A stretch of 64,000 bases of DNA, from sequence record PV764938.1; one strand, written 5' to 3'. The notes below the pieces were generated by a model. The model ran no database searches. It was given only the letters and a program-made list of their open reading frames with translations, and was not told the DNA's origin. Within the stretch, counting starts at the first letter, position 1. Every line of letters starts with the position of its first letter. Below are positions 47,976-61,295 of this stretch, one piece after another. A program made the translations under genes and the position numbers.

Positions 47976-48019
47976 GTCGTTTCTTACTCCAACAAAAACA
48001 ACTACAGAAAAAGATTTTA

Positions 48020-48117
48020 AAAAAGTTGAAAAAAGTAGTTGACGCGGAAAAGAAACATATCGTATAAGAAGATATAACGAAAAAACAGTTGACGCAGGAA
48101 TTGATTCATGCTAGACT
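48020..48117 (+). promoter_or_regulatory. tandem rrn-like promoters at the head of the tRNA array
   Basis: A-tract UP-like element; TTGACG(48040)-N17-TATAAG and TTGACG(48089)-N17-TAGACT. Confidence 0.75.
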
Positions 48118-48121
48118 GTCG

Positions 48122-48350
48122 GGCAAGAGCGCAGCGAAAGCTTAGTTCTTGTAAAGTTTAAGAAGGTGGCTGCTTCCCCATAGAAGCAGACTTCGGCTTG
48201 TAGGATGGCGGAGACTTCGAGTGCTCCAATGCTAGACTGGTTTCAAGCGAAGGATACATTACGGGGACGGACTGTAGTAGGTCCGCTCCCGTATTGGAAA
48301 GCTCATCCTGTCACTGTAACGGCCGATTCGACGCCCACAGCGATGATCTT
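48122..48350 (+). ncRNA. candidate ~230-nt structured RNA leading the tRNA array
   Basis: GCAAGAGC/GTTCTTGT, CTGCTTC/GAAGCAG, AGGATG(48202)/CATCCT(48304), TACGGG/CCCGTA, GGAC/GTCC. Confidence 0.5.
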
Positions 48351-48356
48351 TCTTAT

Positions 48357-48431
<75 letters not shown>

Positions 48432-48502
48432 ACTTTTGTGGGCCGAATGTGCTGGGTTATCTTTTGCTGATGAACCCCAGGACAAACTACTTGCCCACTT
48501 AT

Positions 48503-48578
48503 GCTCCTGTAGATCATCTGGTGAAGACTCCGCACTGTCTATGCGGAAAGGCGGGTTCGATTCCCGTCAGGGGCGCCA
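48503..48578 (+). tRNA. tRNA-Asp(GTC)
   Basis: CCGCA-CTGTCTA-TGCGG; G73; CCA. Confidence 0.92.
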
Positions 48579-48580
48579 AT

Positions 48581-48656
48581 GCTTTCGTAGTGAAACTGGA
48601 CATAACAGGAGTCTACGAAACTCCAGATGAAGGTTCGAGTCCTTCCGAAAGCACCA
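48581..48656 (+). tRNA. tRNA-Arg(ACG)
   Basis: GGAGT-CTACGAA-ACTCC; CCA. Confidence 0.92.
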
Positions 48657-48740
48657 ACAGTTTACGCGAGCCGATATGTTTTGGTTATCTTGACTCTTAA
48701 TCAAACCCTACCCAAAGCAGTCCACTTGCTCGCACTTTAT

Positions 48741-48819
48741 GCCCTCGTAGCCCAACATAGGTAGAGGTGTCACGCTCAGAACGTGAAGGTTGTCGGTTCG
48801 ATCCCGACCGAGGGCACCA
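48741..48819 (+). tRNA. tRNA-Leu(CAG), short variable loop
   Basis: TCACG-CTCAGAA-CGTGA; 5-nt variable loop; A73-CCA. Confidence 0.9.
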
Positions 48820-48826
48820 ACTTTAT

Positions 48827-48903
48827 GCTCCTGTAGCTCAGACAGGTAGAGCGGCACCCTGAAACGGTGCGCGTCGGTGGTTCGATTCCATCTGGGGGCA
48901 CCA
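48827..48903 (+). tRNA. tRNA-Phe(GAA)
   Basis: GCACC-CTGAAAC-GGTGC; CCA. Confidence 0.92.
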
Positions 48904-48915
48904 AACAACACATGA

Positions 48916-48992
48916 TGGGGAATGGCCAAACTGGCAAGGCAGCGCACTTTGAATGCGAAGATGTGTAGGTTCGAACCCTACTTCCCCAACCA
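48916..48992 (+). tRNA. tRNA-Gln(TTG)
   Basis: CGCA-CTTTGAA-TGCG; TGGGGAA/TTCCCCA. Confidence 0.9.
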
Positions 48993-49007
48993 AATAGAAA
49001 TACCAAT

Positions 49008-49090
49008 GGGTGGTAAAAGCTAGTGGTTCTAGCAAGTGGTCTGTAAAACCGCGCCGTACGGGAGTTGTTCGATTCAACTACCACCCACCA
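49008..49090 (+). tRNA. tRNA-Tyr(GTA)
   Basis: GTGGT-CTGTAAA-ACCGC; extended variable region; A73-CCA. Confidence 0.88.
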
Positions 49091-49097
49091 ACAATGA

Positions 49098-49173
49098 TGG
49101 CAAATGGCGCAACTGGTAGCGCAACACACTCTGAATGTGAAGGTTCTAGGTTCGAGCCCTAGTTTGCCAACCA
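49098..49173 (+). tRNA. tRNA-Gln(CTG)
   Basis: CACA-CTCTGAA-TGTG; TGGCAAA/TTTGCCA. Confidence 0.9.
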
Positions 49174-49196
49174 ATTCTTTTGACGATGTGCTTAGC

Positions 49197-49273
49197 TGGT
49201 GCGAGCCGAACATGGTGGACGGGACTCACTGTTAATGAGTACATGGTAGGTTCGATTCCTACCGCATCAGCTA
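49197..49273 (+). tRNA. tRNA-Asn(GTT), ends CTA instead of CCA, inside a 12-bp extended stem
   Basis: ACTCA-CTGTTAA-TGAGT; TGGTGCG/CGCATCA-G-CTA. Confidence 0.82.
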
Positions 49274-49287
49274 AACACATCTCAAAT

Positions 49288-49361
49288 GGGCCGTGGCTCT
49301 GGGTTAGCGGGTTTTCCTTGCAAGAAAACTGACACCGGTTCGATTCCGGACGTGTCCACCA
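49288..49361 (+). tRNA. tRNA-Ala(TGC), irregular acceptor stem
   Basis: TTTTC-CTTGCAA-GAAAA; G3:U70; bulged acceptor; A-CCA. Confidence 0.75.
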
Positions 49362-49366
49362 AACAT

Positions 49367-49442
49367 GGGGTAGGGGCTTGGGTACCCGGATTTTGCTGGC
49401 AGCGAGATAGCCTGGTCGGTTCGATTCCGATCTACTCCACCA
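49367..49442 (+). tRNA. tRNA-Ala(GGC)
   Basis: CTGGCAG loop; GGGGTAG/CTACTCC with G3:U70; A-CCA. Confidence 0.82.
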
Positions 49443-49471
49443 ATTATTTTCGATATTTTTGAATTCAGGAG

Positions 49472-49536
49472 TTGACGCATTCCTGAATTGTGTTATTCTG
49501 ATAATACGGAAACAAACACAACGGAGATCGAAAATG
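49472..49536 (+). promoter_or_regulatory. promoter plus conserved RBS cassette, -35 inside a palindrome
   Basis: AATTCAGGA-GTTGACGCAT-TCCTGAATT; TTGACG-N14-GT-TATTCT; GGAGATCGAAAATG. Confidence 0.7.
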
Positions 49537-49749
49537 GCTAAGTCGAAGATGGAACTGATTCGCGAATTTGCTGCAAAGCAGGGCGTTGAAATCGTTGAAA
49601 TCAAGGTCAAGCGCGTCCGTGCAAAGGACCTCGCAGGTCTCCCGAAGATGGTCGAAAAGACGAACCTGATGACCGGTAAGAAGTACATGGAAGCAGAAGG
49701 CACTCCGCTTTGCTGCTCGCCGGCTTCGGAAACTTACTGGAGCATGTAA
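49534..49749 (+). CDS. small conserved phage protein
   Basis: Ends NLMTGKKYME...TPLCCSPASETYWSM. Confidence 0.75.
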   Translation: MAKSKMELIREFAAKQGVEIVEIKVKRVRAKDLAGLPKMVEKTNLMTGKKYMEAEGTPLCCSPASETYWSM

Positions 49750-49976
49750 TGGCATATCCGGTTCGGTCAACATTCTGGGCTGCTTACAAACTCGTAAGCA
49801 GCCGAGGTGTTTCATTTTTCGAGCAACCCAGCAACGCGGAGCTTGAGCCGATGGTTGCTGCGATCCTGATTCGCGAAAAGGGATATCCTACTGATACAGT
49901 TGTAGAAATCGATGGCTCCGATCCAATGGCTATGGTCTTGGTCGTAGAAGACAACGGTTCCTGGGAACTGGTTTAA
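49749..49976 (+). CDS. small hypothetical protein
   Basis: TAATG overlap, 75 aa. Confidence 0.6.
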   Translation: MAYPVRSTFWAAYKLVSSRGVSFFEQPSNAELEPMVAAILIREKGYPTDTVVEIDGSDPMAMVLVVEDNGSWELV

Positions 49977-50065
49977 ATTCGAGCTGGGGAGTAACAACGG
50001 CAATTGTTGCCGGCCCCACTGAGCCACAGCCCTACTGGAGCTTTGCCGAGCTTCTGTGGGGTTGA

Positions 50066-50128
50066 GACTTCTGGTGTAATGTAGCACACCGCATGGCGCG
50101 GGAGAGTCCGTCGATTCGGGCAAAGTCG
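50066..50128 (+). pseudogene. degenerate tRNA-like element
   Basis: GACTT/AAGTC acceptor remnant, GTG/CAC D arm, CCGC-ATGGC-GCGG short arm, GTCCG-TCGATT-CGGGC T-like arm; no CCA. Confidence 0.45.
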
Positions 50129-50141
50129 TTGGCAACAATAT

Positions 50142-50217
50142 GGGTCATGGGCCAGATGGGACGGCTCCGCTTTTACACGGCGGCATTGACTAGGTTCGAT
50201 TCCTAGATGACCTACCA
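50142..50217 (+). tRNA. tRNA-Val(TAC)
   Basis: CCGCT-TTTACAC-GGCGG; A-CCA. Confidence 0.88.
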
Positions 50218-50225
50218 AACTACAT

Positions 50226-50299
50226 ACCTGTCTAGTATAATGGTAGTGCAGCTGGCTCCAACCCAGCGAGCGTGGGTTCGATTCCTACGGCAGGTGCCA
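50226..50299 (+). tRNA. tRNA-Trp(CCA)
   Basis: GCTGG-CTCCAAC-CCAGC; G-CCA. Confidence 0.9.
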
Positions 50300-50322
50300 A
50301 CACTCTTACGCTTCGGCGTTAT

Positions 50323-50413
50323 GGGGAGTGCCAATAAGTATCGGTGGTCCGGTAGCTGCGCTGTAAACGCAGTCCCTTAGGGCAAGAGGTTCGATTCCGT
50401 CCATTCCCCACCA
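50323..50413 (+). tRNA. atypical tRNA-Tyr(GTA) with 8-bp acceptor stem
   Basis: GGGGAGTG/CATTCCCC-A-CCA; CTGCG-CTGTAAA-CGCAG; long connector before the D hairpin; bulged T stem. Confidence 0.7.
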
Positions 50414-50430
50414 ATTCAGGAATATCCTGG

Positions 50431-50458
50431 TTGACAACTCTGGTTCCCATGTTAAACT
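50431..50458 (+). promoter_or_regulatory. sigma70-type promoter
   Basis: TTGACA-N14-GT-TAAACT. Confidence 0.65.
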
Positions 50459-50486
50459 GTAGTTGAGTTTAACGATGGAGCAGACG

Positions 50487-50741
50487 ATGGCTAACTTCAA
50501 AGGCGAGCTTTTCAACTATAACGGTTCGGCAAAGATCATCTCCGCTGAAGCAAGTGAGCTCTACGGTTTCTATACGGAAAGCGTGTTTGGGATCACAAGT
50601 CATCGCACGGGACGCACGATTCATTTCTGCCACAAGTCCACCGAACGTGATCGCGATAACGATATCACGCATTGGGTTTACGAACCCCTCGGTACAGATG
50701 CTGAAGTGCAGGGCTGGCGCGTCCACATTTACAACGATTAA
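50487..50741 (+). CDS. small hypothetical protein
   Basis: GGAG RBS before ATG 50487. Confidence 0.7.
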   Translation: MANFKGELFNYNGSAKIISAEASELYGFYTESVFGITSHRTGRTIHFCHKSTERDRDNDITHWVYEPLGTDAEVQGWRVHIYND

Positions 50742-50744
50742 CAG

Positions 50745-50819
50745 TTTCTGGTAGTTCAAGCTGAGACAAGAATAGCCGCTGGCCAGCGGAAGATGCGGAT
50801 ACTCAACCCGCCCAGAGAG
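50745..50819 (+). pseudogene. tRNA-like element with 4-nt anticodon loop
   Basis: TTTCTGG/CCAGAGA acceptor; CCGCT-GGCC-AGCGG; GCGG/CCGC T stem with a non-canonical loop; no CCA. Confidence 0.55.
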
Positions 50820-50827
50820 CCTTACAT

Positions 50828-50902
50828 ACCTCTGTAGAATATTGGTTATTTCACCTCCCTTTCAAGGAGAAGAAGCGAGTTCGATTCTCGTCAGGGGTAC
50901 CA
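50828..50902 (+). tRNA. tRNA-Glu(TTC)
   Basis: CTCC-CTTTCAA-GGAG; CCA. Confidence 0.87.
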
Positions 50903-50907
50903 AACAT

Positions 50908-50985
50908 GCTGCCGTACTCCAACCTGGTAGAGAGGTTACGTTGAGAACGTAAATGTTGTGGGTTCGACTCCCATCGGCAGCACCA
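50908..50985 (+). tRNA. tRNA-Leu(GAG), short variable loop
   Basis: TTACG-TTGAGAA-CGTAA; A-CCA. Confidence 0.9.
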
Positions 50986-50990
50986 AACAT

Positions 50991-51065
50991 GCTCTGTTCG
51001 TCTACTGGTTAGGATACTAGGTTTTCACCCTGGTGAAACGGGTTCAATTCCCGTACAGAGTACCA
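50991..51065 (+). tRNA. tRNA-Glu(TTC)
   Basis: CTAGG-TTTTCAC-CCTGG; CCA. Confidence 0.9.
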
Positions 51066-51112
51066 AAAATAAATTGACGTTTAACTGGATACTAACTATA
51101 GTATCCAAGTAT

Positions 51113-51188
51113 GCAGCTCTGGCAGTGATGGTTCATGCGCTGGATTGAAGTCCCAGATATCCCGGTTCGATCCCGGGGGGCTGCACCA
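51113..51188 (+). tRNA. tRNA-Phe(GAA)
   Basis: CTGG(A)-TTGAAGT-(C)CCAG; GCAGCTC/GGGCTGC-A-CCA. Confidence 0.85.
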
Positions 51189-51200
51189 AATTTTGTGAAT

Positions 51201-51274
51201 GCCTGGCAGTGGTCTAGCCGGTCCGGATTACCGTTCGGAAAGGTTGGTTGGTTCAATTCCTTCGCTGGGCTCCA
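51201..51274 (+). pseudogene. Gly-like tRNA variant with distorted anticodon loop
   Basis: GCCTGGC/GCTGGGC-T-CCA; loop TTACCG(T) is 6 or 8 nt; weak D and T stems. Confidence 0.5.
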
Positions 51275-51280
51275 CAAAAT

Positions 51281-51356
51281 GGGCTGTTAGCTCATCTGGG
51301 AGAGCGCCTGCTTTGCACGCAGGAGGTGATCGGTTCGAGTCCGATACGGTCCACCA
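51281..51356 (+). tRNA. tRNA-Ala(TGC)
   Basis: CCTGC-TTTGCAC-GCAGG; G3:U70; A-CCA. Confidence 0.95.
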
Positions 51357-51413
51357 AAGTTTTCGGTACAACACGTGGATAACTCTGCTATAGTGGACAA
51401 AAGGGGATCTGCT

Positions 51414-51680
51414 ATGGTTGTTGTGCTTAGAATTATGGGGACACCAAGCGGTGGTTCTACACCCTACGACAACAAGTTTGTTGTTCGTTGCAACTTTGAA
51501 GCCGGATATGGAACATTGGCAGTTGATGTCACAGATGATCCGAAAAAGGCGATGCAGTTTACTCACGCGGTAGATGCTTTTGCATATTGGAAGACCCAAA
51601 GCAAAACTGAACCGCTGCGGCCGGATGGTTTACCCAATAGGCCGCTCACAGGCGTCAACATGTCGTTGGAACGCCTATAG
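51414..51680 (+). CDS. small hypothetical protein
   Basis: AAAGGGG RBS; ends RPDGLPNRPLT. Confidence 0.65.
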   Translation: MVVVLRIMGTPSGGSTPYDNKFVVRCNFEAGYGTLAVDVTDDPKKAMQFTHAVDAFAYWKTQSKTEPLRPDGLPNRPLTGVNMSLERL

Positions 51681-51685
51681 TTTAT

Positions 51686-51760
51686 TCCAGGGAATCCAAA
51701 TGGTGCGGACCACGCCCGATAAGCGTGTTTTAGTGGGGTCAGAACCCACCCCTGGTACCA
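51686..51760 (+). pseudogene. degenerate tRNA-Ile(GAT)-like RNA
   Basis: CACGC-CCGATAA-GCGTG (C33); T loop GTCAGAA; retains A-CCA. Confidence 0.6.
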
Positions 51761-51766
51761 ACACTT

Positions 51767-51841
51767 GCGCATGAGTCCGAATGGTGAGGGCCTCCCCTGA
51801 TAAGGGAGTGGTAGATGGTTCAATTCCATCCGTGCGCACCA
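51767..51841 (+). tRNA. tRNA-Ile(GAT)
   Basis: CTCCC-CTGATAA-GGGAG; GCGCATG/CGTGCGC-A-CCA. Confidence 0.9.
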
Positions 51842-51849
51842 AAACATAT

Positions 51850-51926
51850 TGCGGGTTAGAGAAGTGGTCATCTCATCGGTCTCATAAACCGGGAATCGTT
51901 GGTTCGAATCCAACACTCCGCAACCA
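51850..51926 (+). tRNA. tRNA-Met(CAT), initiator-like D arm, bulged acceptor
   Basis: TCGGT-CTCATAA-ACCGG; A-CCA. Confidence 0.82.
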
Positions 51927-52013
51927 AAAACAACAGGCGTAAAAGGACTCTTTGACCTCGGTGAAGATTCGACTAAGTCCGAGTAGATGTCCGTCGATTA
52001 GCTCTGTTGTTTT
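51927..52013 (+). ncRNA. candidate rod-like small RNA
   Basis: AAAACAACAG/CTGTTGTTTT closing helix, then GGAC/GTCC and CTCGG/CCGAG. Confidence 0.45.
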
Positions 52014-52088
52014 CTCCCTTAAACACCTCGCCGGGCAGGAGCGTTCGAACTGCACGAGGTGGCTAGACGAACGTGGTCTAGTAAACAA

Positions 52089-52158
52089 CGCTCTGCTACT
52101 GGGTAGACTTGGCTCTCATAAGGCTGATGAGGTGGTTCGATTCCACCCTGAGCGACCA
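52089..52158 (+). tRNA. tRNA-Met(CAT), minimal D arm (70 nt)
   Basis: CTCATAA loop; GGTGG-TTCGATT-CCACC; A-CCA. Confidence 0.72.
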
Positions 52159-52233
52159 ACTTCCTGAGATTCCGATCTCGCCGGGAGGATCTATAGTTCG
52201 GATGTAAAACATGGATCTTCCCACCCTCCCTAT

Positions 52234-52309
52234 GTGTCTGTAGCTCAACTGGATGAGCACCACCCTACGAAGGTGACCGATGTAGGTTCGACTCCTATCA
52301 GACACGCCA
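52234..52309 (+). tRNA. tRNA-Arg(ACG)
   Basis: CACC-CTACGAA-GGTG; GTGTCTG/CAGACAC-G-CCA. Confidence 0.92.
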
Positions 52310-52320
52310 AAACCAACGGA

Positions 52321-52348
52321 TTGACTTTGCTTGAGCCTGTGTTATAAT
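52321..52348 (+). promoter_or_regulatory. sigma70-type promoter
   Basis: TTGACT-N14-GT-TATAAT. Confidence 0.75.
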
Positions 52349-52376
52349 GTAAAAACAACAGCTTAGCGAGGTTCAT

Positions 52377-52805
52377 GTGGGGTTTGTTTATGATGATGGC
52401 GGTCGTTCGGCCGCAGGCTTCAAAGGCAAAACAGGAGATTGCGTTACACGCGCAATCGCAATTGCCACACAATCCGATTACAAGACGGTTTATGATGCGC
52501 TGAATACGATTGCAAAATCCGAAAAGCTCACAAAACGTAAGCCGAAGAAATCAAACTCTCGTACTGGTGTTTGGCGCGATACCGCAGGCAAATACTTGGA
52601 GAGTTTGGGTTGGGTCTGGGTTCCGACAATGCGGATCGGCTCAGGCTGTAAGGTTCATTTGAACCCGAATGAATTACCATGTGGTCGTATCGTAGTGAAG
52701 CTCACGCGCCATATGGCCGCAGTCGTTGATGGAGTGCTGCACGACACGTATGATTGCTCCCGCGACGGTACACGATGCGTATACGGTTACTACCGGATGC
52801 GCTGA
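52377..52805 (+). CDS. conserved phage protein, possible papain-like Cys-His-Asp fold
   Basis: GDCVTRAIAIA...RHMAAVVDGVLHDTYD. Confidence 0.7.
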   Translation: MGFVYDDGGRSAAGFKGKTGDCVTRAIAIATQSDYKTVYDALNTIAKSEKLTKRKPKKSNSRTGVWRDTAGKYLESLGWVWVPTMRIGSGCKVHLNPNELPCGRIVVKLTRHMAAVVDGVLHDTYDCSRDGTRCVYGYYRMR

Positions 52806-52815
52806 TGTGCTTTGT

Positions 52816-52901
52816 TGAAGTGTGACCGAGAGGTAAGGTACCCGGCTGTTAACCGGAGGTTGGATTTATCCAGGCAGGATCGATACCTGCCACTTCAGCC
52901 A
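52816..52901 (+). tRNA. tRNA with Asn anticodon (GTT) and long variable arm, inside a 12-bp extended stem
   Basis: CCGG-CTGTTAA-CCGG; variable hairpin TGGAT-TT-ATCCA; T loop ATCGATA; G73-CCA. Confidence 0.82.
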
Positions 52902-52971
52902 AGCACATCTTTATTGAATATTGAGTGTCATGTCATGTAGGTTCGGGTTGTTAACCCTTAAGGAGCATGAC

Positions 52972-53286
52972 ATGACACTTGATGAACAGATCCGAAATGC
53001 AATCGTTAATCACCAGCGCATGGTTATCCTATATAAGGACGCCAATGATGATGCTCCGGTGGAACGCACGTTCGATGCTTGGACCTACGGGGAAGCATTG
53101 CTCGCAACTGGTACCAAGCAAGCGATGATCGGCGGCAAGTTCGTCGGTGAGCATGTCGCACGTATCAAGTTTGATCGCATTTCGAGCGTCAAGGCTGTTC
53201 TCACGGAATCGTCTGAGGGTCCGGTTGCTCCGCAGCCTGGCAGCAAGAAGAGCTGGAACTGGGAAACAGTTTACGCTCAATGGTAA
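52972..53286 (+). CDS. WYL-domain-like protein
   Basis: IRNAI...RMVILYK...ERTFDAWTYG...RIKFDRI follows the WYL pattern; AAGGAG RBS. Confidence 0.6.
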   Translation: MTLDEQIRNAIVNHQRMVILYKDANDDAPVERTFDAWTYGEALLATGTKQAMIGGKFVGEHVARIKFDRISSVKAVLTESSEGPVAPQPGSKKSWNWETVYAQW

Positions 53287-53308
53287 TACCGGGGCTTCGG
53301 CCCCAAAT

Positions 53309-53382
53309 GGTTCATTGGTGAATGGGTATCACACTAGTCTGTCTAACTGGAATAGCGGGTTCGAGCCCCGCATGAATCGCCA
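53309..53382 (+). tRNA. tRNA-Asp(GTC)
   Basis: CTAGT-CTGTCTA-ACTGG; G-CCA. Confidence 0.92.
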
Positions 53383-53400
53383 ACTTTCTTCCTAAATCGG

Positions 53401-53461
53401 TTGACTACTTCCTGAATTCCTATAATATGGGAATACAACGGAAACACGGAGATCGAACATG
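53401..53461 (+). promoter_or_regulatory. promoter plus conserved RBS cassette
   Basis: TTGACT...TATAATAT; GGAGATCGAACATG. Confidence 0.7.
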
Positions 53462-53701
53462 TCGAAGAAGCTTTTTGGACTTACGGTAACTGAACAGGCC
53501 GCCCTGCGTTACGCTTTTCTCAACAAGCCCACTGGTCTGTTTATCTACAGCCCGACCGGTAATGCAAAGGCGATGGTTCGCAAACTGACGGAAAAGGGCC
53601 TGATGTACCGGACCAAGTTTGGTCAGAACGGTCTGACGGCCGCTGCAATCGAGCTTCGCTCGAAGCTCCTGGAAATTCAGCCGCGCTATATGCCGGCATA
53701 A
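53459..53701 (+). CDS. small hypothetical protein (possible winged helix)
   Basis: 80 aa; KAMVRKLTEKGL...GLTAAA. Confidence 0.7.
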   Translation: MSKKLFGLTVTEQAALRYAFLNKPTGLFIYSPTGNAKAMVRKLTEKGLMYRTKFGQNGLTAAAIELRSKLLEIQPRYMPA

Positions 53702-53778
53702 CAGGGTATAAGGAAGTCTGGTTATCCGGTCACCCTCGGATGGTGGCAACGCTGGTTCAAATCCAGCTACCCTGACCA
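53702..53778 (+). tRNA. tRNA-Pro(CGG)
   Basis: CACC-CTCGGAT-GGTG; CAGGGTA/TACCCTG-A-CCA. Confidence 0.9.
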
Positions 53779-53791
53779 ATTACAAAGAAAC

Positions 53792-53886
53792 GGCAGGACC
53801 CCGGACTATCCGCGGTAACATTGTCCTGAGTCGGCGTACTGAACAGGAACTGATCATTCCCAGTTTAAGTGCCTGTCCTGCCACCA
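53792..53886 (+). ncRNA. 95-nt CCA-ended tRNA-like RNA with non-canonical arms
   Basis: GGCAGGAC/GTCCTGCC-A-CCA; arms TCCTG/CAGGA and AACTG/CAGTT; no TTCG T loop and no 7-nt anticodon loop. Confidence 0.55.
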
Positions 53887-53890
53887 ATTT

Positions 53891-53968
53891 CAGGGTATAG
53901 CTCAGCCTGGTGAGAGTGCTACGTCGGGAACGTAGAGGCCGCTGGTTCAAATCCAGCTATCCTGACCA
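53891..53968 (+). tRNA. tRNA-Pro(GGG)
   Basis: CTACG-TCGGGAA-CGTAG (C33); A-CCA. Confidence 0.88.
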
Positions 53969-54018
53969 AGACCAATAACTATGACGCATGTTACATGCGC
54001 GTTAGTTAGTACGAATAT

Positions 54019-54096
54019 GGACTGGTAGCTCAATTGGTCTAGAGCATCCGACTCTTAATCGGAGGGTTGTGGGTTCGAGTCCCACCCGGTCTACCA
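54019..54096 (+). tRNA. tRNA-Lys(CTT)
   Basis: TCCGA-CTCTTAA-TCGGA; A-CCA. Confidence 0.94.
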
Positions 54097-54146
54097 ACAT
54101 ACTCGGTTTGTAAATAGTGGACACTTTTACAAACCCGGGTAGCCGT

Positions 54147-55250
54147 ATGACACGTCGTAGCAATCTTCTCCGTAGAATCGGAATTAGTAGTTCTGGATCG
54201 AAATTTGGTCCACCGGCTTGGTCTCTTCCAACCGGTGTAGCACCGGATCCCAATAAGATTGCTATCACAGCGGGAACCGGATATGCGGGTTCCACATATA
54301 CTGCGAATTTCGCAACTGGCGGACAATGGTTCGCTGATGGTGTTGCTATTTCCGGTGCAACTGCTCTGACCTATACGATGACAGTCGCCAATGAGGGCAA
54401 AGTCATAACGTATCGTCGAAGCGGCGTTATTTCAAATAGCATTCAAATGTGGTTGTATCCGATGTTGGGAACAACACTCAAATGTTGGTACGACGCAGCT
54501 CTCACAACATCGTTCTCGTATCAATCGGGTATAAACATTTCGAGTTGGGCAAATCGTGTAAGTGGCGCTGTGGCAGCGACGCAGAACACAACTAACAAGT
54601 ATCCGCAATTCACAACTAACGGTCTCCAGAGCGGTTACAACGCTGTTGTTGCCAACGGTACGTTCCAGCAGTTTACAATGGCTTCGGGCTTTGCTCTTGG
54701 TGATCAAACAACGCTTTGCGTTATGAAAACCTCAGACACAAAGACAACCTCTGCAACTAGCTGGTGGGGTAGCCCTGGTATTTGGGGTGACGAAATCAGT
54801 GGTTTCCCTAACGATTTTGCATGGGGGTTCCAAGCTGGTTACCCAATGTTTGGTGCATCCAATACTAAGTTCACATCGACGACAAGGATGGTCGCAGATG
54901 GTCAACCGATGCTGCTGGGTTATACTCGAACCAATACAACGGGTTTGATTAACAACTACTATAATGGTAGTTTCCTGGACTCCGGGACAACGGCCGGTGG
55001 AACTCGTGTTATCAATAACGGAACAACTTCGTTGTTCAATAGTAACTCGATGAACAACGTTGCATCGGGTAATGCCGCATATTTGAGTGCAGCGATTTCG
55101 GATTTCATAATTTTCGACACTGTGCTCAAAGATTCCGATCTTCGCCAAGTTGAAGGTTGCGCTGCATGGCGTTGGGGTCTGCAAAGCAAGCTTCCGGTGG
55201 ATCATCCTTATAGGAATGGTCCTCCAGGTTTTCTTGTAGAAGCTGCTTGA
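54147..55250 (+). CDS. probable virion-surface / tail-fibre-type protein (Ig-like plus LamG/concanavalin-like region)
   Basis: G/T/S/N-rich beta protein; GQWFADGVAISGATALTYT; WYDAA; EGCAAWRWGLQSKLPVDHPY; TAAATA upstream. Confidence 0.7.
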   Translation: MTRRSNLLRRIGISSSGSKFGPPAWSLPTGVAPDPNKIAITAGTGYAGSTYTANFATGGQWFADGVAISGATALTYTMTVANEGKVITYRRSGVISNSIQMWLYPMLGTTLKCWYDAALTTSFSYQSGINISSWANRVSGAVAATQNTTNKYPQFTTNGLQSGYNAVVANGTFQQFTMASGFALGDQTTLCVMKTSDTKTTSATSWWGSPGIWGDEISGFPNDFAWGFQAGYPMFGASNTKFTSTTRMVADGQPMLLGYTRTNTTGLINNYYNGSFLDSGTTAGGTRVINNGTTSLFNSNSMNNVASGNAAYLSAAISDFIIFDTVLKDSDLRQVEGCAAWRWGLQSKLPVDHPYRNGPPGFLVEAA

Positions 55251-55274
55251 CATTAATGGAATTGGTGTTAGAAA
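55247..55274 (+). promoter_or_regulatory. sigma70-type promoter
   Basis: TTGACA-N14-GT-TAGAAA. Confidence 0.6.
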
Positions 55275-55277
55275 CAA

Positions 55278-55495
55278 ACTGCATCGGACGGAAAGTTCGG
55301 TGCAAAGGACTGTATATGCCAGGCGATCTTATCGGACAGGGACGTAATTAACCCCGGGTCCAATTGAGGTAGTTTAAAGGTAAAACGCAGACGGTGACCA
55401 GGGTTCGATCCCCTGGGCGGGCGCTTGCCCGCTACGGTGAAGCCGGAGAGATGCAAGTTTCGAAATCTTGCTCCGATCATAGGATCGTCTGGCGT
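55278..55495 (+). ncRNA. candidate ~220-nt multi-hairpin RNA containing D-arm and T-arm modules
   Basis: TGCATCGGAC/GTTCGGTGCA; D-arm-like TAGTTTAAAGGTAAAAC; CCAGGG-TTCGATC-CCCTGG; CGGGC/GCCCG; GCAAG/CTTGC; CAGACG/CGTCTG. Confidence 0.5.
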
Positions 55496-55508
55496 ATATA
55501 GTTCAAAT

Positions 55509-55586
55509 GGGTGTATGCCTGGAAGTGGGAATCAGGGCTGGCTCTTAACCAGCGACATGTCGGTTCGATCCCGACTGCACTCACCA
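55509..55586 (+). tRNA. tRNA-Lys(CTT)
   Basis: GCTGG-CTCTTAA-CCAGC; A-CCA. Confidence 0.88.
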
Positions 55587-55596
55587 AACGTTTTAT

Positions 55597-55677
55597 GGGC
55601 CGGCTACAAGTGGCTGGTAGAGGGCGTGGCCTTCGGGGCGCTCTTGCGGAGGGACACGCGCTCCGTCTGGTCCACCA
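55597..55677 (+). ncRNA. anticodon-less tRNA mimic with Ala identity elements
   Basis: GGGCCGG/CTGGTCC-A-CCA with G3:U70; CTAC/GTAG D stem; AGGGCG/CGCTCT arm capped by CC-TTCG-GG; GCGGAG/CTCCGT T-like stem. Confidence 0.65.
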
Positions 55678-55740
55678 AATTTCCAAACTTTTCAAATCCT
55701 AGCATTCAGTTGCTAGGCTAAACCGGTTAAGCAACCAAAT

Positions 55741-55816
55741 GGGTGTGTGGCCGAGCGGTTTAGGGACCGGCCTTTTAAGCCGGGCAACGTGGGTTCGAAT
55801 CCCACCGCACCCACCA
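55741..55816 (+). tRNA. tRNA-Lys(TTT)
   Basis: CCGGC-CTTTTAA-GCCGG; A-CCA. Confidence 0.93.
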
Positions 55817-55821
55817 TTTAT

Positions 55822-55895
55822 GTTCGGGTAGGCTAATGTAAAGCCGCTCCCACGAAAGGGAGTGATTGTTGGGTCAAAACCAACCCTGAACACCA
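55822..55895 (+). pseudogene. tRNA-like RNA with 6-nt ACGAAA anticodon loop
   Basis: GTTCGGG/CCTGAAC-A-CCA; CTCCC-ACGAAA-GGGAG; T loop GTCAAAA. Confidence 0.6.
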
Positions 55896-55896
55896 T

Positions 55897-55973
55897 GTCC
55901 TTGTAGCCCAATTGGTAGAGGTACCAGACCGAGATTCTGGGGGTTGTGGGTTCGAATCCCACCTAGGACACCA
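55897..55973 (+). tRNA. tRNA-Leu(GAG), short variable loop, C33
   Basis: CCAGA-CCGAGAT-TCTGG; A-CCA. Confidence 0.8.
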
Positions 55974-55988
55974 AACGATGTGTTTAGT

Positions 55989-56064
55989 CAGGGTAGACGT
56001 AGGGCAAGATTACTACTACCCTTGGAAGGTAGTGAACCCGGGGCGGCGCCGGGTACCCTGACTA
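55989..56064 (+). pseudogene. degenerate tRNA-Pro(TGG)-like RNA inside a 12-bp extended stem
   Basis: CAGGGTA/TACCCTG-A-CTA; CTACC-CTTGGAA-GGTAG; CCCGG/CCGGG T stem with loop GGCGGCG. Confidence 0.6.
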
Positions 56065-56077
56065 AGCACATCAATAT

Positions 56078-56155
56078 GCCCGTGTAGTCCAACCAGGTAG
56101 AGGCGCCGGATTCAAATCCCGGATGTTGTCGGTTCGAGTCCGACCATGGGTACCA
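56078..56155 (+). tRNA. tRNA-Leu(CAA), short variable loop
   Basis: CCGG(A)-TTCAAAT-(C)CCGG; A-CCA. Confidence 0.87.
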
Positions 56156-56163
56156 AATTATAT

Positions 56164-56238
56164 GCTCCTATCGAATAGCGGTCAGTTCGCTACCCTCTCA
56201 AGGTAGAAACACGGGTTCGAATCCCGTTAGGAGTACCA
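56164..56238 (+). tRNA. tRNA-Glu(CTC)
   Basis: CTACC-CTCTCAA-GGTAG; CCA. Confidence 0.92.
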
Positions 56239-56293
56239 ATTATTGACTTCCTGGATTTCCCGGCACTAAAATGCTAGGAAAAACAAGGAGTTA

Positions 56294-56710
56294 GTGATGA
56301 AGCTTGAGGACAAATACGCAGGTGCAATGGGATCCGTTGAGGAGTTCGATTTCGAACACTTTGTTGAGGGTTCCCTGAGAAACCTGATGAAGGATGATGA
56401 TCTTCGTTCGTTCCGTTACGAAGAGGTTATTCTCCGTCCTCGCCATCTGATCATGCTTTGGGAAACACTTCGGACCGCGAAGGCCGAGCTATTCACGGCT
56501 CGTGCACCAATTGTGGTATTCGATGGTCAAAGCTACGAGATCCGATCCATTGCTACCGACACATTCGAGGATCTTCTCAAATACGTTGAGGATCTCACAC
56601 AGAGCAATTCGCGCGTGCTGTTGTACTCGGTCATGCGTAACGGCTTTGTTGACCCCAATACATTTGAGGGTCAAACCCGATACAAAGTCCGTTTCGGTAT
56701 CATCTCTTAA
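56294..56710 (+). CDS. hypothetical protein
   Basis: 138 aa, AAGGAG RBS, TTGACT promoter upstream. Confidence 0.75.
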   Translation: MMKLEDKYAGAMGSVEEFDFEHFVEGSLRNLMKDDDLRSFRYEEVILRPRHLIMLWETLRTAKAELFTARAPIVVFDGQSYEIRSIATDTFEDLLKYVEDLTQSNSRVLLYSVMRNGFVDPNTFEGQTRYKVRFGIIS

Positions 56711-56712
56711 AT

Positions 56713-56786
56713 GCCCATATAGCTCAGTGATAGAGCAACGCTTTCGTACAGCGAAGACTTGGGTTTGATTCCCAGTGTGGGCTCCA
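56713..56786 (+). tRNA. tRNA-Thr(CGT)
   Basis: CGCT-TTCGTAC-AGCG; GCCCATA/TGTGGGC-T-CCA. Confidence 0.85.
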
Positions 56787-56787
56787 T

Positions 56788-56862
56788 GCTCCTATAGTTC
56801 TAGTGGTAAAACAATCCTTTGGTAGGGGACAGTTGGTGGTTCGATTCCACCTAGGAGCACCA
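56788..56862 (+). tRNA. tRNA-Thr(GGT)
   Basis: TCCT-TTGGTAG-GGGA; GCTCCTA/TAGGAGC-A-CCA. Confidence 0.88.
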
Positions 56863-56867
56863 ATTGC

Positions 56868-56921
56868 TTGACACTTTGGTTGCCTGTGTTAGTCTAAGAC
56901 GATAACAGGAGATCGAACATG
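56868..56921 (+). promoter_or_regulatory. promoter plus conserved RBS cassette
   Basis: TTGACA-N14-GT-TAGTCT; GGAGATCGAACATG. Confidence 0.7.
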
Positions 56922-57185
56922 AAGGCAACTGTTTTTTATTGGCTCAAGAAGCCATGCGACGACGCCCTACTCGACAAGGCCTACGACAATGGTCTTGTTG
57001 ATCCCGATTGGGTTAAGAAGGGCGGCCGCACATTCGTCGAATTCAACCGCGAAGGTGAAACTGTCGACGAAATCGTAGCTGGCTGTAAAGCTGATCTCGA
57101 AAAGCACGGCATCGGATTCAAAGACAAGGTTTACGTCTTGGAAATTGATGGTGTGCGGCAAAACGTGGATCCACGCTACTCGTAA
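56919..57185 (+). CDS. small hypothetical protein
   Basis: 88 aa, strong RBS. Confidence 0.75.
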   Translation: MKATVFYWLKKPCDDALLDKAYDNGLVDPDWVKKGGRTFVEFNREGETVDEIVAGCKADLEKHGIGFKDKVYVLEIDGVRQNVDPRYS

Positions 57186-57191
57186 TTTTAT

Positions 57192-57265
57192 GCCCGTGTA
57201 GTTCAATGGTAGAACGCTTGGTTGTGGCCCAGGAGACGTAGGTTCAATTCCTACCGCAGGTACCA
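57192..57265 (+). tRNA. tRNA-His(GTG) lacking G-1, with U72/A73
   Basis: CTTGG-TTGTGGC-CCAGG; base -1 is T; 3' end CGCAGGT-A-CCA. Confidence 0.88.
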
Positions 57266-57283
57266 AATCAGAAGGATCCCGTA

Positions 57284-57820
57284 GTGGATTACGTGAAGAA
57301 ACTAAAAGAAGCACAGGACACCGGAGGCGCAAAAGCTGTCTGCGGAACTGTGCTTCTTGTCATGCAGGGAATCAGTTCAGACAATGGACGGTTCAATCGG
57401 CAAAAGCTTGCTGGAACTCTCGAGAATGATGGCAACAGTGGGTTGCTCGCTGCTTTCGAGTTCTGCGAAATGCTCATGGCCAACACCATCTATTATTCGA
57501 TGCGTGATCGCTCCGATACTCCGTTGAAGCAGATCCGTTGGCTGACAGAGCTGTGCAAAATGCACAAGGACTACCACAGCAAAACAACGCCCGAATTCGT
57601 GTTTATGCTGGACGCCGTTGCCTATGCGATGAACGAGAACATCAAGGATTTCCTCGAGGTCATCGACAAGAAAGTTTCCAAGTTTGGATCCGAAAGCGTC
57701 GGCAGCAAGCACCAGGATAAGATCCACAAACTCGCACAATACTTGATTGAGTTTCAAATCGAAGGCGAACACGTCGAACAGTTGAAGCGACGGGCAATGA
57801 TCGCAAAGCTTGCCAAATAA
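57284..57820 (+). CDS. hypothetical protein, ends RAMIAKLAK
   Basis: 178 aa, AAGGA RBS. Confidence 0.75.
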   Translation: MDYVKKLKEAQDTGGAKAVCGTVLLVMQGISSDNGRFNRQKLAGTLENDGNSGLLAAFEFCEMLMANTIYYSMRDRSDTPLKQIRWLTELCKMHKDYHSKTTPEFVFMLDAVAYAMNENIKDFLEVIDKKVSKFGSESVGSKHQDKIHKLAQYLIEFQIEGEHVEQLKRRAMIAKLAK

Positions 57821-57871
57821 TATCGCAGTTTAGGAACTCCTTTGCTAGAATCAGTCAAAAGGAGTTCCTAT

Positions 57872-58285
57872 ATGCTTGAAGATCTATTTCTAAGGGGCTG
57901 GGTCGTACTTGTCGATCCTGGGGTCCCCCTTGAGGACCCCGCTGAGTATCTCGCGGAAAAATACTTGGGTATGTTCCCGTCCGCGGAACTTATCGAATGC
58001 ACTGAAAATTTCAAAGTCGCCGAATCAGATCGCATTGTGGAATGGCACAATGACTCTAAATTCGGTATGAACATTACTTTCCTCTATTACGTGGATGAGA
58101 TGTCCGAGAGCACAGGCGGTTCAATCAGCCTGCGTAACTTGGACACACAAGATGAAGCTAAGATTTATCCCAAGGCTCACCAACTAATCATCATGAGTCA
58201 GAAACCACATATTGAACATAGAGCAGAATACTGTAGTGTGCGACGTCACATGTTCAATATCGACTATAAGGTCAAGGGTTTCTGA
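57872..58285 (+). CDS. 2OG-Fe(II) oxygenase-family protein
   Basis: EWHNDS (H-x-D), ITFLYYV, GG, distal IEHRAE and R; AAGGAG RBS. Confidence 0.75.
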   Translation: MLEDLFLRGWVVLVDPGVPLEDPAEYLAEKYLGMFPSAELIECTENFKVAESDRIVEWHNDSKFGMNITFLYYVDEMSESTGGSISLRNLDTQDEAKIYPKAHQLIIMSQKPHIEHRAEYCSVRRHMFNIDYKVKGF

Positions 58286-59007
58286 TGTATCGGTTTGCGT
58301 TCTTTTTCTTTTTGTTCTTGGTTCTCTCAACCCCGCTGTGGGCTTGTGAGGTTACTGAACGCACTGGTGCTCCTCAGGTCCAGGTTCCCGGTATTTCAAT
58401 CTGCCGGACTGGATACGAGCTCCTCTACCGACCCGAATACAAGACAGCGTTTTGGTCTGCCGAGCATGTGACGGCGGATGAAGTTAAGGGAAAGTCCGAA
58501 CGTGAGGATGCCTTCCAAAGCGATCCACTCATTCCGGACCAGCTTGAGGCTCAACTATCCGACTATGCAAAGTCCGGTTATGCTCGTGGACATTTGGCTC
58601 CCGTCGGCAACTTCCGCGACGATCCCAAGGAAGCACAGGAAAGCTTCTACCTGACGAACATGGTTCCGCAGTGGCAGAAGTGTAACAATGCGGGCGTATG
58701 GTCGCAGATTGAACGAGTGGTTCGTGACTGGGCTGTTCACTATGGTGAGCTTTACGTGGTCACTGGCCCGATTTATCAGGGTCCAGTTCGGACAATCGGT
58801 CGCGGTGTTCGTGTACCGGACCAGCTGTTCAAGGTTATTTGGAATCCGCAGCTGAATGCAACGGTTGGCTTCGTTGTTCCGAATCTGCCCCTGTGCAAGA
58901 CCAAGCCCCGTGATTTCATGGTGAGTGTTGAGAACGTGGAGTTTCTCACTGGGATTAAATTCTTCCCTAAGGTGAAGGCGGAGTCTTTGGACCGCCTCTG
59001 GAACTAA
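58285..59007 (+). CDS. secreted DNA/RNA non-specific endonuclease (NucA/EndA family)
   Basis: Signal peptide; YARGHLAP, ESFYLTNMVPQ, NAGVWSQIE, YVVTGPI, VPDQLFKV. Confidence 0.92.
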   Translation: MYRFAFFFFLFLVLSTPLWACEVTERTGAPQVQVPGISICRTGYELLYRPEYKTAFWSAEHVTADEVKGKSEREDAFQSDPLIPDQLEAQLSDYAKSGYARGHLAPVGNFRDDPKEAQESFYLTNMVPQWQKCNNAGVWSQIERVVRDWAVHYGELYVVTGPIYQGPVRTIGRGVRVPDQLFKVIWNPQLNATVGFVVPNLPLCKTKPRDFMVSVENVEFLTGIKFFPKVKAESLDRLWN

Positions 59008-59294
59008 ACGCCCAGAAGCGGATCTTCTCCATAGCGGATTGCGAAGAATACAACAAATTCCTTCGCGTCCGCTGGGGTCAAGTTGAACCACTCTCCCTTG
59101 ACACGCTTGTAGCCGAGATCCAAATGGATTTTCTTCTCAAGCTTACGGACTTGCTTTGCAGCGATGGGTTCCTTGTGGTGGATAAACAATTCACCTGGAT
59201 AACCCGTTTGTAGGGTTTGAAGTCTCTTCTCTACGTTGCCGCTGAGTCCGATTTTTTGTGGGCCTTCTTTTGGGCCTATGACATAAATAAACAT
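59004..59294 (-). CDS. GIY-YIG / T5orf172-like protein
   Basis: FIYVIG...QKIGLSGNVEKRLQTLQTG...EKKIH...GEWF. Confidence 0.8.
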   Translation of the reverse strand: MFIYVIGPKEGPQKIGLSGNVEKRLQTLQTGYPGELFIHHKEPIAAKQVRKLEKKIHLDLGYKRVKGEWFNLTPADAKEFVVFFAIRYGEDPLLGV

Positions 59295-59355
59295 TGAAAT
59301 GCTCCGAAAGTTTCGCTAGTATAGCGGAAATTGGAATAGATTCCAATTTAGAAAT

Positions 59356-59431
59356 GGGTGATTAGCTCAGTTGGTAGAGCGCCGGCTCGACACGCCGTAG
59401 GTCACAGGTTCAAGTCCTGTATCACCCACCA
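59356..59431 (+). tRNA. tRNA-Val(GAC)
   Basis: CGGC-TCGACAC-GCCG; GGGTGAT/ATCACCC-A-CCA. Confidence 0.92.
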
Positions 59432-59505
59432 AACACACAACGGTCATCCAATCCTAACCGAATTGGGACGCATTCGTGGCAACCCTTTCAAGGTGTTGTG
59501 TGTTT
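59431..59505 (+). ncRNA. candidate 75-nt RNA closed by an 11-bp helix
   Basis: AAACACACAAC/GTTGTGTGTTT; internal TCCAAT/ATTGGG and CCT/AGG hairpins. Confidence 0.4.
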
Positions 59506-59508
59506 TAT

Positions 59509-59585
59509 GCACCTGTAACTCAGTGGACGAGAGTGTCACGCTTCGAACGTGAAAGTCGGGGGTTCGAATCCCTCCAGGTGCTCCA
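59509..59585 (+). tRNA. tRNA-Arg(TCG)
   Basis: TCACG-CTTCGAA-CGTGA; GCACCTG/CAGGTGC-T-CCA. Confidence 0.9.
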
Positions 59586-59646
59586 ATTGCTTGACAAATC
59601 CAAAAGACTCTGTAGGACTACAGGATAAAGGATTTGAGGATAAGCC

Positions 59647-60021: not shown

Positions 60022-60031
60022 AGGGCACACC

Positions 60032-60277
60032 ATGTTTGTTCTCTTCGGCGTAATCTCGCCCTATGATGGTTCCTATATCTTGGGAGTCTTTGACACTCTC
60101 GAGAAGGCTACCGAGGGACGTTCGACGTTCCGAGCCGACTACTGGGCCAAAAACAAGTGCGAGCCCTATGAGTCCTACGAGACTTATGAGCACGCGCTCA
60201 ACGTACTTGGTGAACAGCATCAGCCCGTTGATGTGTTTGTGCCGGGCAAGACCAAGCGACCAAAAGGACGTCACTAA
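60032..60277 (+). CDS. small hypothetical protein
   Basis: ATG 60032; TAATG coupling to the next gene. Confidence 0.65.
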   Translation: MFVLFGVISPYDGSYILGVFDTLEKATEGRSTFRADYWAKNKCEPYESYETYEHALNVLGEQHQPVDVFVPGKTKRPKGRH

Positions 60278-61288: not shown

Positions 61289-61295
61289 AAACTAA

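Follow-up and report, generated by a model that had tools for sequence, protein, structure and literature searches.

In-register leader–trailer helices clamp single tRNA genes in Sinorhizobium phage Phosso and other large phages

The transfer RNA (tRNA) arrays of phages are usually seen as codon supply or as spares against host defences, with products that the host matures like its own tRNAs. For bacterial RNase P, a leader ending in A(-2)U(-1) is optimal, and pairing of two leader bases with the 3′ RCC costs about 10-fold in kcat/Km (PMC10731613). Pairing of positions -1 and -2 with N73 and C74 in extended acceptor stems likewise slows RNase P (PMC10731613, PMC12439589), protein-only RNase P is hindered by acceptor stems lengthened by G-C pairs (PMC12439589), and engineered sequestration of the leader turns RNase P processing off (PMC7897497). 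A second enzyme is also documented: phage T4 tRNAs mature with the participation of E. coli RNase III (PMC4810235). Leader–trailer helices around ribosomal RNA (rRNA) and extensions of 1-2 bp on precursor tRNAs are therefore known, and here we describe helices of at least 12 bp that enclose individual phage tRNAs in register. They were found in the jumbo phage Phosso (PV764938.1; 469,473 bp), isolated on Sinorhizobium meliloti, in a window of 64,000 nucleotides (nt; window position = record position - 372,000). An initial annotation of this window knew of no described system with the motif shared by its clamped tRNA genes, and a literature search bore this out, finding no description of an in-register leader–trailer clamp on phage tRNAs.

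Phosso has four clamps. Positions here and below are those of the window unless a record or contig is named; the first three clamps correspond to record 421185-428072.

49185-49281 (+): clamp W1, with 5′ arm GATGTGCTTAGC (49185-49196), tRNA-Asn(GUU) body (49197-49269) and 3′ arm (49270-49281)
52804-52909 (+): clamp W2, with 5′ arm GATGTGCTTTGT (52804-52815), tRNA-Asn(GUU)-like body with a long variable arm (52816-52897) and 3′ arm (52898-52909)
55977-56072 (+): clamp W3, with 5′ arm GATGTGTTTAGT (55977-55988), degenerate Pro(UGG)-like body (55989-56060) and 3′ arm (56061-56072)
Record 461179-461254 (outside the window): tRNA-Thr(tgt), clamped by the 19-bp helix AACAAACGCATTAGTTGAT/ACCAATTAATGCGTTTGTT, unrelated in sequence to the flanks of W1-W3

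All three sites in the window carry the 12-bp flanking motif with exactly the coordinates and sequences first annotated, and at each of them the flanks lengthen the 7-bp acceptor stem to 19 bp in register, burying the discriminator and the CCA position as had been proposed. The 3′ arm of W1 reads G73-CTA-AACACATC (as RNA, G73-CUA-AACACAUC) and is paired at 11 of 12 positions, with one C·A mismatch. In W2 it reads G73-CCA-AGCACATC (as RNA, AGCACAUC), with 11 of 12 positions paired, including a U·G, and a U·C mismatch that faces C75. W3 has A73-CTA-AGCACATC (A73-CUA-AGCACAUC), and all 12 positions are paired, one of them as U·G. CCA is thus encoded only in W2, and the reported change of CCA to CTA holds for the other two. 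Minimum-free-energy folds give the closed 19-bp helix (12 + 7) with a cloverleaf (z-scores of -5.6, -4.5 and -7.2 for W1, W2 and W3), and this helix is coaxial with the 5-bp T stem. The added helix contributes -12 to -15 kcal/mol in the Phosso clamps that contain TGTG and -22 kcal/mol in the tRNA-Thr clamp. ARAGORN calls both W1 and the long-armed W2 as tRNA-Asn(GTT), in agreement with the initial annotation; against the Rfam tRNA model (RF00005, family threshold 29 bits) they score 44.0 and 43.9 bits, among the weakest tRNAs of the array. W3 has no ARAGORN call and no Rfam tRNA match even at E<=10; its anticodon arm is intact, and a GC hairpin replaces the T arm. The anticodon loop is a perfect Asn CUGUUAA in W1 and W2 and CUUGGAA in W3. 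A hammerhead or other ribozyme, considered because W2 contains CUGAUG, was rejected, as there was no Rfam match and neither W1 nor W3 has the motif.

Chance is excluded as a source of the paired motif because GATGTGYTT...AARCACATC has three exact matches in the window and none in 100 shuffles, and because the pair TGTGYTT...AARCACA does not occur again in the whole genome beyond W1-W3. When the 12 leader bases of every ARAGORN tRNA of the window were scored for pairing with the 12 bases from the discriminator onwards, W1 and W2 reached 11/12 and the other 38 tRNAs 1-7/12; W3, which lacks a call, was read by hand at 12/12.

The same architecture is present in other large phages. Scanned for the bare motif, viral contigs returned more than 120 matches, roughly the number expected by chance on an estimate from motif frequency and an assumed collection size, and only one, in the tRNA array of a 415-kb IMG/VR contig (locus L117), was a real clamp. 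Because the bare matches were near chance level, the pattern was anchored on the T loop. In this 415-kb contig, for which no close relative was found in GenBank, tRNA-Arg(acg) is flanked by GATGTGCTTTGC…GCCAAGCACATC; the neighbouring tRNA-Arg(gcg) has AGTGTGTTTTGC…GCCAAACACACT, where the register is kept and three pairs have changed in a compensatory way. The anchored pattern found further clamps in 578-kb, 134-kb and several smaller viral contigs and in soil-metagenome contigs, and scoring these loci by structure only added clamps of unrelated sequence, such as CTGCGATTTTGT/ACCAAATCGCAG on tRNA-Ile and AAGATTAACTGGC/GCCAGTTAATTTT on a long-arm tRNA-Asn. The resulting set comprises 33 non-redundant clamps from other large viral and soil-metagenome contigs, every one with an extension of at least 12 bp, on tRNAs for Arg, Met, Pro, Ile, Gln, Leu, Thr, His and Asn. 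The initial claim of a 12-bp flank conserved around differing bodies therefore stands for W1-W3; the flank is not confined to Phosso, and the clamps of tRNA-Thr and of other phages can be unrelated to it in sequence. Clamped tRNAs of other phages are mostly canonical and CCA-bearing, with tRNA scores of 49-70 bits, which implies that they have to be matured in order to function. The clamp has a restricted distribution. In cellular genomes (596 Gb), the T-loop-anchored core pattern matched six times, never as a clean in-register clamp, and apart from Phosso's own no clamp was found among about 270 tRNAs of other phage arrays: those of Atu_ph07 (21 tRNAs), phiCbK (24) and RpAliso (22), and about 190 tRNAs around Ro genes or otherwise unrelated. 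Two further searches for relatives used open reading frames (ORFs): the 142-aa ORF that precedes W2 occurs widely in unrelated phages and yielded no tRNA arrays, and a 367-aa ORF embedded in the array yielded no relatives.

Aligned on the tRNA, the clamps have a common anatomy. N(-1) pairs with N73, and the partner of C74, which is invariant, is G(-2) in 95%. At position -3 the base is mostly U or C, and in 25 of the 33 clamps it stands unpaired opposite position 75; position 75 is itself variable, the encoded ends of 20 clamped tRNAs being CCA in 15, CTA in four and CAA in one. U(-4) then pairs with A76, followed by at least eight more pairs. The YTT-H-G-N part of the flank (YUU-H-G-N as RNA) is accounted for because it is the complement of N73-CCA-A, which nearly all array tRNAs encode. 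Unclamped tRNAs (window 48000-63000 and related loci) encode N73-CCA-A in almost all cases and end their leader in A(-2)U(-1), these two bases occurring at 74% and 79%. The +1 base is other than G in 18 of 20 clamped and 32 of 109 unclamped tRNAs (Fisher p = 4e-7), and a discriminator G is commoner in the clamped class. Most clamps also carry a UGUG/CACA box at -10 to -7, 7-10 bp from the tRNA. As RUGUGYUU/AARCACAY it is found in three of the four Phosso clamps, and at least six other phage lineages carry it in the majority of their clamps. Since the discovery patterns contained the TGTG core, the box is over-represented in the collection; in clamps found by co-location alone, without the pattern, it is present in about 60%, and its recurrence is too frequent for chance. 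The simpler idea that ARCACA is the usual trailer was ruled out, as 101 unclamped trailers are A/U-rich, with C at 20-23% versus 70-75% at the box positions.

Several findings show that the helix is under selection. Pairing counts are bimodal, with 10-12/12 in clamped tRNAs and 1-9/12 in 109 unclamped neighbours. In an ungapped alignment of the 33 clamps, 10 of the 12 extension pairs have changed on both sides, and the covariation score is 0.878, compared with 0.09-0.20 in slid controls and 0.20 in shuffles. The clearest case is a metagenome contig, L233, from a relative of Phosso in which the order of genes is unchanged and nucleotide identity is 77-90%. W1 is 100% identical there; the W2 clamp is kept by a change of GATGTG/CACATC to GATATG/CATATC, and its T stem is kept by a second double change, from G-C to A-U. 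At the position of W3, the flanks in L233 are the same but surround a canonical tRNA-Pro(tgg), which has CCA and the T loop TTCGAAT, and the anticodon stems of the two differ by a compensatory C-G to U-A change. W3 of Phosso is therefore a clamped tRNA-Pro from which the T arm and CCA have been lost, and a newly acquired A(-3):U75 pair completes its helix. W3 is either decaying or kept for its clamp and anticodon arm alone. That compensatory changes would be absent from homologues had been named beforehand as one outcome that would refute the proposed signal, and they are present. The clamp is a well-supported, selected RNA structure common to a set of large phages.

The same data bear on a reading at the level of DNA, in which the inverted repeats would either be the ends at which a mobile tRNA cassette recombines or transposes, or form a palindrome bound by a protein. 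The termini are of the TG…CA type seen at transposon ends, and different cargo lies between the same ends within one genome. However, the repeat starts exactly at tRNA position -1 and takes in the discriminator and CCA, and both arms change compensatingly in orthologues without conservation of sequence. In the extension, 13 G·U pairs stand against four A·C mismatches, a count partly biased by the selection criterion; this far better tolerance of G·U indicates the tRNA-sense RNA strand. The clamps have no flanking direct repeats, the Phosso genome has no empty palindromic sites, and the fixed inverted repeats, target-site duplications and empty sites that would mark a mobile cassette, as in miniature inverted-repeat transposable elements or integron attC sites, are wanting. 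A DNA-level element is thus hardly credible.

The clamps lie inside a dense array in which tRNA genes alternate with small ORFs and each unit is preceded by a sigma-70-like promoter. Each sits 3-11 nt behind a functional upstream tRNA and about 5 nt ahead of the next, and for each of W1, W2 and W3 an unclamped isoacceptor copy exists elsewhere in the genome. The unclamped tRNAs that matter here are the following.

49098-49173 (+): tRNA-Gln(ctg), ending 11 nt ahead of W1
56078-56155 (+): tRNA-Leu(caa), starting 5 nt past W3
61445-61520 (+): canonical tRNA-Asn(gtt), 64.1 bits, the ordinary isoacceptor twin of W1 and W2

Phosso also encodes several proteins and one further tRNA of relevance to tRNA processing and decoding.

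PV764938.1 367954-369522: CCA-adding-family enzyme, with PolyA_pol and tRNA_NucTran2_2 domains
PV764938.1 167468-168694: T4 Rnl1-type RNA ligase
PV764938.1 371043-371558: polynucleotide kinase, by annotation only, with no Pfam match
PV764938.1 446731-446806: tRNA with anticodon CTA, annotated as tRNA-Pyl (amber-reading)

Genes for IF-1, IF-3, RRF, S21, three peptidyl-tRNA hydrolases and several aminoacyl-tRNA synthetases are present as well.

It may well be, and this is the reading that we tentatively favour, that the helices are leader–trailer processing clamps, which block access of RNase P and of 3′ enzymes until an RNase III-type cut, with repair of CCA afterwards. In the primary transcript, the 12-nt 5′ leader pairs in register with the discriminator, C74, A76 and eight trailer bases, and the resulting 19-bp helix stacks on the T stem. 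A precursor closed in this way should resist RNase P, 3′ trimming and aminoacylation until a double-strand-specific endonuclease opens the helix. A six-frame motif search found no RNase III signature in Phosso, so host RNase III would be the default candidate. RNase III suggests itself because a 19-bp helix on a T stem is substrate-sized and because of the role of this enzyme in T4 tRNA maturation; as in RNase III processing helices, a near-uninterrupted duplex of about two turns is formed by the flanks of a stable RNA. Ordinary end trimming would follow, and the phage CCA-adding enzyme would rebuild the end where position 75 is not C. Such rebuilding is suggested by the invariant C74 beside a variable, unpaired position 75. 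The same cut might free the 3′ end of the tRNA or messenger RNA directly upstream. Since the clamp begins 3-11 nt past the upstream tRNA, a cut at or in the helix is needed for that tRNA too, and 3′ maturation of tRNA-Gln(ctg) needs a cut between it and W1. The excess of +1 bases other than G suggests that the clamp serves tRNAs that are poorer or error-prone substrates for RNase P, or that have a weak terminal pair; its purpose may be fidelity, folding or timing.

Several observations weigh against this processing scheme. The clamp structure is well supported, but the mechanism is what we infer, and RNase III in particular enters it through helix length and precedent. Within the array, the clamped genes of Phosso resemble tRNAs least (44 bits, 44 bits and no match) and, as unclamped isoacceptor copies exist, they may not be needed as tRNAs. 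With full pairing and no CCA, the helix of W3 resembles a permanent structure more than it does a precursor. Nor would a generic nuclease of double-stranded RNA explain the fixed-distance UGUG/CACA box. This box recurs in phages of very different composition, for which a dedicated factor may be responsible, although the loci were found via the TGTG core and the frequency of the core in the collected set is inflated to that extent.

A dedicated factor, either a nuclease or a binding protein, phage-encoded or retargeted, could read the box and release or hold the tRNAs at a set time in infection. The position of RUGUGYUU/AARCACAY never departs from -10 to -7, the majority of the clamps found by co-location only still bear it, and CACA is not a general feature of unclamped trailers. 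On the other side, the same genomes contain clamps of unrelated sequence that lack the box (on tRNA-Thr of Phosso and on Ile, Gln and Leu tRNAs of other lineages), the box drifts through compensatory changes to AUAUG, UGUA or UGCG, no candidate box-reading protein was identified, and ascertainment favoured the core. We regard such a factor as rather unlikely. The initial proposal of a dedicated processing or regulatory signal is upheld insofar as the structure is selected at the level of RNA; a strictly sequence-specific nuclease is not required, because the clamps of tRNA-Thr and of several other phages are unrelated in sequence. A bolder version, which we consider possible but doubtful, is a phage-specific system of gated tRNA release in which the leader–trailer helix, 12 bp or longer, bears at a fixed distance from the tRNA a conserved box with its own reader. 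That reader could be a double-strand RNA nuclease not yet known, or the phage Ro60 protein together with an exonuclease, and it would time the availability of tRNAs with a non-G +1 base or non-standard long arms. W3, and perhaps an element at 61337-61443, would then have been converted to permanent tRNA-shaped RNAs with a new job.

Persistence of the RNA in its clamped form is also the basis of the alternative raised in the initial annotation, namely that the clamps are stable, non-chargeable anticodon-loop decoys that would titrate anticodon nucleases of the host or other defences aimed at tRNAs. The perfect Asn loops of W1 and W2 fit this idea, as does the retention of CUUGGAA in W3, with a compensatory stem change, despite replacement of the T arm. 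The existence of an unclamped isoacceptor for each window clamp is in its favour as well, and the ligase and annotated kinase amount to a T4-type tRNA repair set. Yet tRNAs of many identities are clamped, their bodies are canonical, 15 of 20 encode CCA, and a non-G +1 base together with an anti-RNase-P leader are features of processing and not of decoys. The alternative fits the degenerate Phosso copies but not the family, most members being canonical tRNAs and the orthologue of W3 an intact tRNA-Pro, and we consider it very unlikely; the degenerate W3 alone may act as a decoy.

Another way in which the clamped RNA could be the final product is as a ligand resembling Y RNA, which would tether or gate a phage Ro60 protein through its terminal helix and tRNA-like module. 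Phosso encodes a genuine Ro60 orthologue.

PV764938.1 290301-291965 (L148 40301-41965) (+): Ro60 orthologue (XYS97555.1), with TROVE and vWA_Ro60 domains (E ~1e-47)

No canonical YrlA or Y RNA is recognisable within 3 kb of this gene. Bacterial Y RNAs contain tRNA-like modules, and Yrn1 of Deinococcus radiodurans, with a terminal stem and D-like, anticodon-like and T arms, has the topology of a clamped tRNA (PMC4201824). The clamps indeed have the long 5′/3′ terminal stem and tRNA-like module of a Y RNA, and W3, fully paired and without CCA, is not a tRNA. RNase P cleavage at the 5′ end of tRNA-Leu(caa) would leave W3 a 5-nt single-stranded 3′ tail beside the helix, the type of RNA that Ro binds. 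However, the Ro-contact motif, GNCGAAN0-1G in bacteria and GGUCCGA in vertebrates, lies near the 5′ end (PMC4201824) and is absent from the clamps, whose 5′ strands read (A)CGAUGUGYUU or CUGAUGUGCUU. Neither W1 nor W3 has a Y_RNA or YrlA covariance-model match at E<=10, and the whole window yields only tRNA against Rfam at gathering scores. The Ro60 gene is about 130 kb from the clamps, unlike YrlA genes, which adjoin the Ro gene. Ro60 relatives occur in 528 viral contigs, many of them beside tRNA clusters, but clamps are rare: none was found in about 190 tRNAs of Ro-gene loci. Clamp-bearing contigs are not among the 80 best Ro matches, which speaks neither for nor against co-occurrence. Most clamped genes elsewhere are canonical tRNAs, and a role as Ro ligand is improbable.

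Other elements of these arrays show related features. L126, a 15.7-kb viral contig, has a degenerate clamped Pro(UGG)-like RNA that has in common with W3 an unusual 5′ segment, AGGTAGACGTRGGGC, and 1.2 kb downstream (5106-6086, +) an Rnl1-like RNA ligase 35% identical to that of Phosso. A search for the odd D-arm of these two RNAs gave one extra match, by chance, at a locus without tRNAs. In another phage tRNA array, a GOLLD RNA (194.7 bits) is followed 46 nt further on by a miniature clamp, an arrangement also present at L217 and L219; the miniature clamp consists of ATGTGTTTTGT-GTAACAG, an interior of about 50 nt that is not tRNA, and CTGTTAC-A-CTA-AACACAT.

L215 1700-2162 (-): GOLLD RNA
L215 1569-1654 (-): miniature clamp (z = -6.7)

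Long variable arms or extra length are found on many tRNAs with Asn, Gln, Lys, Ile(tat), Met, His or Pro anticodons (window 11344-11436 and 52816-52901; loci L117, L123, L125, L130, L134 and L229), several of them clamped. To our knowledge, tRNAs of these identities never have long variable arms in cells. These odd tRNAs could be intron-bearing, or type II-like with altered identity.

Within the Phosso array, the gaps hold tRNA-sized elements with T-loop-like GGTTCGA motifs, several with CCACCA ends, for which ARAGORN gave no call and Rfam none at gathering score.

49005-49092, 49288-49363, 50324-50412, 51195-51278, 52060-52160, 55335-55420, 55820-55895 (+): uncalled tRNA-sized elements

The first occupies the position of tRNA-Tyr(gta) in L233, and 50324-50408 has a weak tRNA-Sec-like match (28.5 bits). 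The element at 61337-61443 (+), which no tool calls, has a terminal stem of about 24 bp, GGGCAACACATAG-AGTTGGTCAGC/GCTGGCCAAC-ATTATGTGTTGCTT, enclosing three small hairpins in a cloverleaf-like fold (z = -4.7). It ends 1 nt ahead of the canonical tRNA-Asn(gtt), and its stem contains the box of the clamps on exchanged strands, as CACA/UGUG. At 59428-59508 (+), tRNA-Val(gac) has a trailer, CCAAACACACAAC, that can pair with GTTGTGTGTTT, the leader of tRNA-Arg(tcg), which comes next; this is a clamp-like motif in the inverse arrangement, a hairpin between two tRNAs, and its fold is not significant (z = -1.2). Upstream of W2, the ORF at 52377-52805 (+) encodes 142 aa with the motif GDCVxRAIAIA and no Pfam match, and has relatives 50-67% identical in 20 unrelated viral contigs. 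Because its TGA stop lies inside the 5′ arm of W2, a terminating ribosome would cover that arm. Elsewhere in the window, 29991-30090 forms a nearly perfect hairpin with a stem of about 25 bp, the size of an RNase III substrate, just 3′ of the ribosome recycling factor gene and overlapping the end of an annotated 38-codon ORF.

If the processing reading is correct, some phages send part of their tRNA set through a separate and possibly timed maturation pathway, since the clamped class is built against RNase P and its neighbours carry the leader that is optimal for that enzyme. It would also provide a sequence rule for finding clamped tRNA genes, explain the persistence of some CTA-ended "pseudo-tRNAs", and offer synthetic biology a natural, compact RNA lock on tRNA expression.

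Four described systems come closest to the clamps. In the leader–trailer stalks of 16S and 23S rRNA, pairing of the flanks encloses a stable RNA, and cutting separates the units of a polycistronic transcript (PMC10250234). The clamp differs in that a single tRNA lies inside it and in that it prolongs the acceptor stem in exact register, taking in the discriminator and CCA; it also has a recurrent UGUG/CACA box and a mismatch at C75, and its cleavage is presumed. Bacterial precursor tRNAs with extended acceptor stems, in which G(-2)G(-1) or G(-2)U(-1) meets a 3′ RCC, likewise pair -1 and -2 with N73 and C74 (PMC10731613, PMC12439589), but these extensions are 1-2 bp long and the precursors are still processed directly, whereas the clamps have at least 12 bp and run at least 8 nt past CCA. 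The Y RNAs YrlA and Yrn1 combine a 5′/3′ terminal helix with a tRNA-like module, and Yrn1 has the same order of arms (PMC4201824); YrlA is circularly permuted relative to the clamped RNAs, which lack the Ro motif, a match to the Y RNA models and adjacency to a Ro gene, and are mostly canonical tRNAs with anticodon arm and CCA. In synthetic RNase P riboswitches, pairing of the leader by the cleavage site shuts off 5′ processing of the tRNA (PMC7897497). Those devices are engineered and controlled by a ligand, whereas the clamp is natural.

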